A DNA stretch of 63,735 nucleotides, filler included, from Lenisia limosa (Eukaryota > Protista > Breviatea), in NCBI GenBank assembly GCA_001655205.1. It is 16 parts of 16 records of this genome, joined end to end, with 100 filler letters (N's around TTAATTAATTAA, not from the genome) between each part and the next. Parts side by side here need not be neighbours in the genome. Positions count along the whole stretch, not along the records: positions 36,133 to 45,791 come from LPNZ01003810.1; 15 more parts are not named here. The stretch is one strand, 5' to 3'. Shown here in pieces: positions 40,495-43,400 of the stretch. Position numbers and translations under genes: made by a program. The first letter of the stretch is position 1; each line of letters begins with the position of its first letter. The notes under the pieces are model-generated. The model saw only the letters and a list, made by a program, of their open reading frames with translations, was not told the DNA's origin and searched no databases.

Positions 40495-43400
40495 ATGGGG
40501 TCTATGAGAAGCGACACGAACTACAATGATGACAGTGAAGAAGACCGCCCGATAGAACGCCGGTCATCTCACAGGTCGTCTTCTTCCCGATCTGGTCACC
40601 GCTCAAGATCGCATAGGTTTGCCTTTGTGCGTTAATATTCTTTGGGGTGACAGCGAGGCAAACGTGGAAAATCAAATGCTCTGAATATGGGAGAGAATAG
40701 GAGCGTTTTTTTATGGCAGTTTTGGAGAACGTTTCTTTGGATTGGTCTTTTTGTGGACACAGGTTAGTCACTATCAAGTCGCTTATTGTTTTGTGAAGTG
40801 TATAGAGGTTGGTTTTCCATTTTCCAAAGTTTATCTTCATAATCCTTTCATTGGTGGTCCTTTAGAGGAAGATGGACTTCTGTACCGTTAAAGACCAAAG
40901 GAAACCGCAATGAGTATATAGTATATGATATATGATATCAAGCTCTATATATATTTTTTTATTACTATTTTTTATTTTTTTTATTTTTGTCAATTTGTAC
41001 AGATTTGAGCTTTCCCACTACCAGAAAATGATTTTTAAAAGACCAAGGGTTTATTGACAATTTTCAGGCAGAATCGAAATAGAAGGAACTCATGCATCAT
41101 ATCAGATCAGAATAAGTGTATTGGATTAACGTAATCTCTGCTTTCTGGAAAGTGGACTGTGTAATGCTCATAGGTCGCGATCAAGGCGTTCTAGATCCAG
41201 ATCCAGATCATCCCGTCGCTCTCGGTCTCCTCGCAGGTCGAGATCATCAAGATCGCCGTCAAGACGACGGTCAAGGCACACTGAGTCATCAAGGTTGGGT
41301 CAAGACTAAAACAAAAAGTCGGATTTTCGGATTTTTGCTCTTGTTCCAAAATCTTGGGTTTGGGTGCTAGTTACAATTACATAATGTATCCGGGCTGGGG
41401 TGCTTTAACGTGTCATCAGATCTTCAAAAAGACACTCGTCGCGCCACAGCAAGCGCTCTCGATCGAGGGAAAGGTCCAGATCAAGATCAAGGACCAAGAG
41501 GAGGAGATCGCCGCGGTCGCCCAGGTCTCCGAAGTGGTCGCCTCAAAGAGAGATGAGGTGAGGCTGTGTCCTCTTTCATGAAAGGCTTCTTGAGGTACAA
41601 ATAAACCCCAATCGTCTCGTTAAATCCTTGATATATCCCTAATACTATCTGATCTTTCGCCACTTATGTGGATTGAACGAATTTCATAATTGCAGCCCGA
41701 TGTACCACAGTTTTTTGGATAGAGGGAAGGATAACAACGAGTACAAAGAGTTGGTGGAGGGACCACCTTTTTTTGAGTCTGTGAATGCGAGTGGTTTTGG
41801 TATTTGGATGTTTCTTTTTTATCTGACCATCCAATTGTAGATATGGAGACGGAATGGATCGATTCCACAATCCGAAGCACAGTGATCAGAACCTCCAGCG
41901 CCGGGCGGAGCAGAGAGCCACATTGCCTTTCGGTTGGTGTTTATGGCGGATACTGTTGTTAATTTTGCCTTTATGTATGCTTTATGAAATATGCCTTTGT
42001 GTTTATCATTACACCAATATTCTTCTTCGAAATTTCCTACGTTTAACTCCCCCAGAATCAACGTAAAAATATGTGCCGCCAAAATAGACAATATTACCTT
42101 ATCACCTTATAACCTTACCCCTCATGCGTTGCTAGCCAACATAGTTGATTATGGGCTTTTTTTGTTCCATAAAATTATTCAATTTCACTCCGAGAATCGA
42201 CATTGTTAATCCCCCCCCCTCCCCCAGAATCAACGTTATTGTGGCCGCGTTCGCCCAGCCCGGGCACCGTGAGGCGCCAACAGCAGGAAATGAAAGTTGG
42301 CTTTTATCTTGTCATTGTTAATAGTTTTTGGTTAAGTGGCGTGTTTAAACATAATGATCAATAATCTTTGTATTTCTATTATGTTACTCCTGTTTGTCGT
42401 ATCAAGGGCTCAACTTCGAGGCTGAAATACTCGATAAATCTCTAAAACTATCGATAAATCCTCGAAAATTATTGATAAATCCTCGATAAATCCTCGAAAA
42501 CTATTGATATAATACTGATCTTTTAAAACCAAAGTGGTACTCTAGTTGTATCCTTAACTCACCTCACAGCAAGCGGAGGAGGATTCCAAGAAGAGGAAGA
42601 AAAGGGAAATAGAGAGGAAGCAGAAGAAGATGGAAAAGAAGCTTAAGAAGGAAGAGAAGAAGAAGAGAAAGAGCGCAAAGGGAAGTAAGAGGGGTGGGTC
42701 CGTCATCATTGTATCCTCTTGCTCTCTAAATAAATATTGCTAAATTCCTCGATAAATCCTCAGTATAATCAACACTTTAGCTGTCTTTTTAGATAAAGGC
42801 TTATATATTTGAGATTACAGTTGCCTTATCACTCAATATTCAATCTTGTTTGATCATTTTCACCGACATTTTTTTTAAAAAAAAACAATAAACTGATACT
42901 TCCTCCCCTCCCAATCACATTACCAAGTCGCATGGTTCGTAACTATTTGATATTTTCTGTTCTCATGGATGTGTTTCCAATGTTTACCCCTCCTCCCCAC
43001 GCCAATATTCATTGAAATTTCTTTCATCACCCCACCCCCAGATGTAGAAGTGACTGGTCTAGGCTTTGTTTGTTTTGTTGTTTTTAACCCTTGTATGTTT
43101 CCCAAATACTAAGCTAACAGTTGATCCGGTTTTTTTTGTGTTTCATAATTTTCCATTTTATACCAATTTTCTTCATTGAAATCCTTCGTTATACCGGAGT
43201 GATGGGATGCGGTGCTGNNNNNNNNNNNNNNNNNNNNNNNNNNNNNNNNNNNNNNNNNNNNNNNNNNNNNNNNNNNNNNNNNNNNNNNNNNNNNNNNGGA
43301 TAATGACGAAAAAACCACGCCTGTTGTTGAGCCATCTCTATTTGAAAGTGGTATGATGAGGAATATCTCTTTTTGGAGTAATCTTTATTTCAGCAAGCAA

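Follow-up and report, generated by a model that had tools for sequence, protein, structure and literature searches.

Stacked retroposon-like elements and a duplicated splice acceptor in an NKAP intron of the breviate Lenisia limosa

The 63,735-nt stretch of Lenisia limosa DNA analysed here (the window; GenBank assembly GCA_001655205.1) joins 16 parts of this genome, one of which, from record LPNZ01003810.1, carries an NKAP-like gene on the plus strand. One intron of this gene closes with three acceptor-like ends in a row, and an 18-nt sequence covering C-tract, AG and the first nine exon bases occurs there twice without a single difference. The explanation we favour, to which we give about an even chance of being right, is that retroposon-like elements were piled up at the 3' end of the intron and that one insertion left the 18-nt repeat as a target-site duplication across the intron/exon border.

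The first end, of the E type described below, reads ...gtttaaCTCCCCCAG, with aatcaacgt coming directly after its AG at 42054-55; the second, of the A type, reads ...caatttcactccgAG with its AG at 42193-94 and runs on as aatcgacattgtta; the third is a C-tract, ...ccccccccCTCCCCCAG, whose AG at 42226-27 is followed by the exon start aatcaacgttattg. All three had been pointed out in an earlier, sequence-only reading, and inspection, a repeat search and independent contigs bear them out. The sequence CTCCCCCAGAATCAACGT stands at the first end (copy R1) and at the third (R3), 18/18 identical, and a diverged copy at the second (R2, 42186-42203) agrees with it in 13 of 18 bases. Tandem arrays excepted, the pair of R1 and R3 is the longest short-range direct repeat of the piece; block shuffles of the piece never gave one above 14 nt, and short-range repeats of at least 11 nt number 19 against a shuffle mean of 1.3. 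Chance does not account for the pair. The 18-mer begins exactly at the border between the body and the C-tract of the E-type unit E1 and spans the AG and nine exon bases, and the closing C-run of the 154 nt between its copies blends into R3 (Table 1). Exact direct repeats of at least 10 nt around units were found, under strict filters, at the NKAP locus only. From 41800 to 42400 the window is identical letter for letter to the contig L051 of ENA assembly ERZ3820729, which represents the same genome as SPAdes contigs with gene calls in the style of open reading frames (ORFs), and a Logan DNA contig covers 40400-43081 with zero differences at an ordinary coverage of about 29x; window, L051 and Logan contig probably rest on one read set.

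The acceptor in use can be told from a 2284-nt polyA RNA contig (an assembled contig, not reads) that was placed on the NKAP exons. Its record positions 656 and 726 correspond to window positions 41931 and 42570, and the 69 nt between them equal base 41932 plus the exon 42228-42295, so that the last acceptor (42227|42228) is the one used; 102 nt would be needed by the second acceptor and 241 nt by the first. RNA depth is zero over 42020-42199, a segment where DNA word depth is 3924 against a baseline of about 30, and the contig omits every NKAP intron that bears A or E units, which are thus removed by splicing. Use of the upstream acceptors, which had been proposed for checking, is not seen in this assembled transcript, where only the last one is present; minor use of the second may still occur, since assembled contigs lose rare isoforms. 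The third end had also been taken for the only one that keeps the NKAP frame. In fact the second reads on in frame as well, adding 33 nt without a stop and thereby 11 residues before ESTLLW; reading on from the first end gives EST and then the stop TAA.

In the exon model, the NKAP exons include 40495-40616, 41174-41293, 41420-41557, 41841-41932, 42228-42295 and 42570-42684, with the stop codon at about 45343. The RNA contig has 56 nt between 41555 and 41841, and these place an in-frame exon of 54 nt, which a naive exon model would miss, near 41696-41749 or 41723-41776; both placements preserve the frame. Birth of a whole intron by one exon insertion was tested for intron 41933-42227 only, and there the outer borders have no common junction repeat and elements occupy only the 3' part. 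The first NKAP intron has an identical 7 nt, CATAG|GT, across both junctions (40612-40618 and 41169-41175), which leaves the joint ambiguous in the RNA placement and is the footprint expected if one insertion with an AG|GT target duplication made the intron.

That the ends belong to repeated intron elements, as the sequence-only reading had it, is borne out by a profile search (nhmmer) with an A model of 146 and an E model of 53 positions. The census covered the window piece and nine further contigs (L052 to L060, chosen via ORFs inside repeats), about 112 kb in ten contigs with different genes; L051 duplicates part of the window, and the fetched contigs make up only about 0.15% of the assembly. 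It returned 48 A hits and 16 E hits, located in introns of unrelated genes. DNA word depth in the intron bodies ranges from 3,900 to 130,000, i.e. 100 to 4000 times baseline, which identifies these bodies as high-copy repeats. The A model starts (acgctggag)TGATGGG and ends ...CCAATTTTACTCCCCC plus a C-run, its long form measuring about 146 nt plus tail. E is an alternative 3' module of 53 nt, ending ...GAAATTTCCTTCGTTTTA followed by a C-run and CAG, and because composites of an A body with E behind it occur repeatedly, the two are regarded as modules of one family.

Among the A copies the 3' end is kept and the 5' end is ragged: 36 of the 48 reach model position 140 or beyond, with starts scattered from 3 to 102. 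The terminal C-run measures 2-15 nt, and the first AG ends at most 6 nt from it in 19 of 33 copies. One such tail is the C9-T-C5-AG end behind R2, a family tail that occurs elsewhere, since an A copy of L057 finishes with the same 17-mer (8046-8062) and another, in L052, with a 15-mer version of it. No terminal inverted repeats (TIRs) were found in three full-length A copies. Flank repeats vary in length from 3 to 18 nt; those of at least 6 nt accompany 8 of 36 A copies, against 6.4% of mismatched flank pairs, and clean ones were found in L060 (10 nt), in L058 (8 nt) and in the NKAP intron (18 nt). A C-run of at least 4 nt lies within 20 nt on the 5' side of the 5' junction in 15 of 47 A copies, compared with 7.2% of random positions; A copies thus sit right behind other tails, in head-to-tail stacks. 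Wherever the strand of the host gene is known, units lie in sense to it with one exception (18/19), which implies selection for splicing. The earlier preference for reverse transcription over cut-and-paste transposition agrees with these features (fixed 3' end, ragged 5' end, variable homopolymer tail, no TIRs, varying flank repeats), and the copy profile resembles that of insertion based on reverse transcription, in which the tail would pair with C/G-rich targets. The A 3' end was also sought in metagenome contigs; its 50 matches were all due to chance, with flanks showing no similarity.

According to the explanation we favour, the 3' half of the NKAP intron would consist of piled-up short mobile elements of one family that are highly abundant and reside in introns, and each copy, by its C-run and usually a CAG, would bring a ready-made polypyrimidine tract and acceptor. 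New copies would land beside existing C-runs, be they resident tails or C-rich acceptor tracts, and hence would stack at the 3' ends of introns. In the case of NKAP, a staggered break probably reached from within the C-tract of the E-type acceptor to the ninth base of the exon, and its fill-in would have produced the 18-nt target-site duplication, so that C-tract, AG and exon start now flank an insert of 154 nt. As the downstream copy still abuts the exon, splicing there would leave the mRNA unchanged while the intron grows.

Stacking is seen in other introns too, and in most stacks the next unit follows directly on the previous end, with no exon-start copy. The sequence-only reading had expected each insertion to duplicate AG plus about nine exon bases; a duplication of this kind does exist across the NKAP border, but it does not occur once per insertion, and the census gave one further candidate. 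There, in another gene (L052), CCAGTTCCAAA[A/C]AG is present twice, 86 nt apart, around a block with an A-like tail end, the exact exon start being without RNA confirmation. Counted over the whole sample, pairs of C-rich AG ends that lie 15-400 nt apart and share at least 8 of the next 10 bases number nine, against 0.7 expected. Divergence was compared with distance from the exon in 17 stacks: consensus is matched better by the exon-proximal unit in 10 of them and by the distal one in 7 (7 to 3 among A-A pairs), a weak trend that neither confirms nor refutes polarised growth.

In the NKAP intron that follows the studied one, a second stack ends in the leader of an A copy entering an assembly gap; L051 fills the gap after 43221, and the sequence after 43199 is A leader. 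Two candidates, 43204-43221 as an exon and 43044-43058 as a micro-exon, were rejected, since L051 and L052 show both to belong to a long A element. Upstream of 43046 one RNA contig continues ...caattttactcccc tgggatgcggtgctgc instead of the E3 end of the window, so that transcripts of a differently arranged version of this intron exist, derived from another allele or locus. The pair TCCCCCACAG[T/C]GAAA was considered as a second case of an exon-start copy and dropped after alignment with other copies, its upstream member being an internal C-tract module. In L053, at about 880-940 on the plus strand of the locus and antisense to its gene, an inverted A unit lies at the 5' end of an intron, and the reverse complement of its CCCCAG|AC end, GT|CTGGGG, seems to act as donor.

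The middle copy R2 deserves separate attention. It reads aatcGacAttGttA against the exon's aatcAacGttAttG, both encoding E S T L L, and its four differences over 14 nt are all synonymous transitions at third codon positions; with five third positions among the 14, four differences would all land on them with a probability of 5/1001. No other copy of this stretch was found in the roughly 112 kb, so it is not part of the element consensus, and its purely synonymous divergence implies evolution under coding constraint. R2 had been read as a decaying relic, a view with which such a pattern does not agree. Either the second acceptor serves or served as an in-frame alternative adding 11 residues, or else a diverged homologous junction, in a paralogue or on another allele, was the template for the block. 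A-to-I editing of an RNA template was excluded, two of the four changes being G to A. With R1 showing no change in 18 nt and R2 diverged, a common age of the three copies is very unlikely; the equal-age likelihood d^2(1-d)^18 peaks at about 0.0015.

Two further observations concern the repeat copies. Between the motif of acceptor and exon start and the 5' part of the A unit, complementarity amounts to 79-92% (42137-42155 against 42223-42241 and 42051-42062). That 5' part is in addition a partial palindrome (caac...gttg), and the exon start may go back to a fragment of an element. An RNA structure suggested by the complementarity was dropped, as the predicted fold is no stabler than shuffles (z +0.86). 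A 7-nt flank repeat, AAATATG, around E1 plus R1 might conceivably make E1 the youngest insertion; its P is only 0.04, and removing the block of E1 and R1 gives no better alignment to a related module.

Several observations weigh against a single insertion of a retroposon-like element. R2 lies within the supposed insert and is not predicted by a plain target-site duplication, and the A unit of the block departs from the family consensus by about 19% though the flanking repeat is perfect. Family-wide, the evidence from flank repeats is modest, with 11 of 36 copies lacking any and with short CAG matches that are ambiguous. Although the nine junction pairs exceed chance, as the earlier reading would have it, several of them are element starts or tandem repeats, and exon-start copies are convincing in two introns only, which makes them an occasional by-product and not the rule of stacking. 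A poly-C tail is unusual among retroposons; a search of Rfam for a tRNA, 7SL or 5S-like head gave no match at E <=1 bar one chance hit, and the precomputed Pfam lists of the fetched contigs contain no reverse transcriptase or endonuclease gene. Finally, head-to-tail stacks whose upstream units are 3'-truncated could arise by template switching in single events.

The alternatives account for some of these points at a cost elsewhere. The sequence-only reading had proposed a serial history, in which E, then A and then a tail-only C-tract unit were inserted at the border, each duplicating AG plus 9-13 exon bases, with the newest unit next to the exon and older ones decaying upstream. All three ends are indeed typical of the family, 9 nt and 13-14 nt of exon-like sequence stand behind the first two, a tail-only unit would suit extreme 5' truncation, and the proximal unit is the one closer to consensus in the majority of the A-A stacks; yet the copies are out of order, for the most distal and supposedly oldest, R1, is perfect, whereas R2 has four substitutions and a changed acceptor, and the likelihood of R1 being as old or older is at most about 0.0015. 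Together with synonymous changes in R2 that do not look like random decay, 9 identical nt upstream in R1 and R3 that would have to be a coincidence, and exon copies missing from most stacks, this makes such a history improbable. We think the same of a local DNA duplication with no new element, by which slippage or templated break-repair insertion copied the junction into nearby C-tracts and last-acceptor splicing restored the mRNA. Homopolymer C-runs are fragile, the short A model takes 42136-42217 as one unit with a 19-nt insert (R2) within its C tail, much like a templated patch, and the L052 example has several partial junction copies (ccagttc) in microsatellite-like filler; short direct repeats near intron borders are also reported in general (PMC11782384). 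What such a duplication leaves unexplained are the 154 nt of element sequence between two perfect 18-mers and the synonymous-only divergence of R2, and a tandem duplication would copy the whole interval, not just its ends.

The young, perfect 18-nt repeat and the coding-type divergence of R2 would be reconciled if the 154-nt block had been copied, by reverse transcription or by repair, from the corresponding junction in a second, diverged copy of NKAP (a paralogue or a distant allele) and guided in by homology, so that R2 arrived already diverged. A loose end of an RNA contig at 43046 hints at a second allele or locus, and the terminal C-run of the block could have primed on the target C-tract. 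Several steps are needed, though, and no second NKAP locus turned up, no search having been aimed at one; we hold this origin to be quite improbable. That the triplication is an assembly artefact, a mis-join of repeats or haplotypes, we consider barely credible: the region is rich in high-copy repeats and scaffold gaps lie at homopolymers, but the Logan contig and L051 agree with the window at about 29x, even if all three may share one read set, and the 18-nt repeat is shorter than the k-mers of the assembly.

The retroposon-like profile of the A/E family can be set beside several known systems. Non-LTR retroposons, i.e. long and short interspersed elements (LINEs and SINEs) that insert by target-primed reverse transcription, have a fixed 3' end, frequent 5' truncation, a variable homopolymer tail and variable target duplications of up to about 20 nt; they prefer targets that pair with the tail and form head-to-tail chimeras by template switching. 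A copies share with SINE-like retroposons the conserved 3' end with variable 5' truncation and the variable simple-sequence tail. They differ in that the tail consists of C instead of A, that Rfam reveals no pol III-type head and that a reverse transcriptase partner is absent from the fetched contigs. The homopolymer tail of a retroposon can serve as a polypyrimidine tract, as in acceptors born from Alu elements, where an antisense poly-U tract is combined with an AG. Alu does so in antisense and creates new exons, whereas the sense C-tail of A/E with its CAG replaces or adds acceptors of existing exons. Helitrons are characterised by 5' TC, 3' CTRR, a subterminal hairpin, insertion between A and T and no duplication; full A copies open with (acgctggag)TGATGGG and close with a C-run, they have no hairpin at the 3' side, some have flank repeats, and the family does not fall among Helitrons.

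In intron gains of Daphnia, short direct repeats at the borders are reportedly put down to the repair of staggered breaks or to insertion. Rogers and Bendich (2025, PMC11782384) describe direct repeats of about 4-30 bp that lie on intron/exon borders or close to them and are read as insertion footprints. In both cases the repeats bracket whole introns, while the NKAP 18-mer brackets only the 3' part and includes the acceptor. Introners or introner-like elements are described from Micromonas, Aureococcus and dinoflagellates such as Polarella; they carry one splice site, the other can be provided or duplicated by a target-site duplication of 3-8 nt, and many families may occur per genome. In a survey of 8,716 genomes, non-LTR-derived introners made up about 5% of the classified families, in addition to families of unknown mechanism (for introners in general, Roy et al., bioRxiv 10.1101/2020.10.14.339549; Gozashti et al., PMC12130899). 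With introners that use a target-site duplication for a splice site and non-LTR introners thus published, the earlier remark that no described element behaves this way was too strong. Like introners, A and E are short and non-autonomous, lie in many copies in introns of unrelated genes, are spliced out and bring a splice site, as illustrated by A1, which ends exactly at the acceptor of exon 44458, and by the C-tract unit ending at 42227. The best-studied introners are TIR DNA transposons with fixed duplications of 3-8 nt, in contrast to the missing TIRs, ragged 5' ends, C-run tails and flank repeats of 3-18 nt found here. Moreover, introners make a new intron inside an exon, whereas the NKAP duplication copies an existing acceptor and an old intron grows. 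Stacking at the 3' ends of introns was not found described in the introner literature compared. Transposon-made introns are already known; new here are the retroposon-like profile, the C tail as polypyrimidine tract, the stacking at acceptors and the duplicated acceptor with exon start.

Table 1. Features of the NKAP locus, in window positions.
Feature	Position	Strand	Basis
NKAP exon 5' of the studied intron	41841..41932	+	RNA contig record 8 on 41841-41931; frame kept in exon model
Intron, 295 nt, GT..AG, with three stacked acceptor-like ends	41933..42227	+	RNA contig arithmetic
E1, E-type unit ending ...gtttaaCTCCCCCAG	42009..42055	+	nhmmer, E model positions 3-47, 0.87 identity to consensus
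R1, upstream 18-nt repeat copy: C-tract, AG, 9 exon-like bases	42047..42064	+	18/18 identical to R3
154-nt block: diverged, 5'-truncated A unit (A3) plus R2, C-run at end	42065..42218	+	A model 69-143 on 42117-42191
R2, A-type end cactccgAG, then 14-nt exon-start copy	42186..42208	+	Repeat search; 10/14 bases equal exon
C-tract unit ending in the used acceptor	42208..42227	+	17-mer C9 T C5 AG; RNA contig supports AG 42226-27
R3, downstream 18-nt repeat copy over working acceptor and first 9 exon bases	42219..42236	+	Repeat search; RNA contig
NKAP exon (23 protein letters)	42228..42295	+	Exon model and RNA contig arithmetic
Second stack (following intron), in order E3 end, A2, E2 end and the 5' leader of another A copy entering assembly gap	43001..43221	+	nhmmer; L051
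Two partial A units stacked before the exon starting 43592	43476..43591	+	Profile matches
A1, A copy supplying the acceptor of the exon starting 44458	44342..44457	+	A model 35-145; RNA contig piece starts 44458

Other repeats are present in the same piece. A distinct and far more abundant one, with the core GTGGACGGCTTCGGCCAGA.ACAACCTTG, lies at 36535-36580, 43950-43995, 44565-44700 and 45450-45495 and reaches a DNA word depth of about 131,000 against the baseline of 30; one copy, in an intron of the 3' untranslated region (about 45346-45553), is spliced out of the RNA contig. No homologue was found for an ORF in the highest-copy repeat. Nested in a copy of the abundant repeat is an element of about 88 nt with TIRs (ggcttcacgtcggttcg ... 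cgaaccgaagtggagcc; 44594-44681), and similar pieces occur at 43660-43740 and in L052. Tandem units of 11 nt (CGATAAATCCT and variants) stand in several introns in both orientations (42425-42510, 42743-42761, 41622-41640 and L052 at about 6600-6680), and tandem repeats of about 59 nt (ACCTAGAAC... units) occupy the edge of the piece (36133-36290), adjoining a chromodomain-encoding exon of a minus-strand gene. Many introns have G-runs directly behind GT and C-runs before AG, and the scaffold gaps at 37425-37514, 43222-43297, 44158-44251 and 45043-45212 lie at or beside long G, C or T homopolymers or repeat copies.

Transposon-made introns are the leading account of bursts of intron gain, and most worked examples concern DNA transposons that create introns inside exons. 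The NKAP locus shows a retroposon-like element family that bears a complete acceptor signal. When a duplication spans the border, acceptor and exon start are copied together and the mRNA is therefore unaffected; this offers a simple route to longer introns, to acceptor turnover and to in-frame alternative acceptors, such as the one adding 33 nt, which seems to be under coding constraint. A broader idea, which we put forward tentatively and think rather unlikely to hold, is that a C-tailed, retroposon-like introner primes on the C-rich tracts of 3' splice sites, including its own earlier copies, and so is drawn to acceptors, which it duplicates or replaces, lengthening introns at their 3' ends and sometimes copying the host junction by template switching. 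If true, this would make the family a splice-acceptor-directed mobile element, and should the whole genome show the same preference for C-rich acceptor tracts, the family would be one of the rare mobile elements directed at splice sites.

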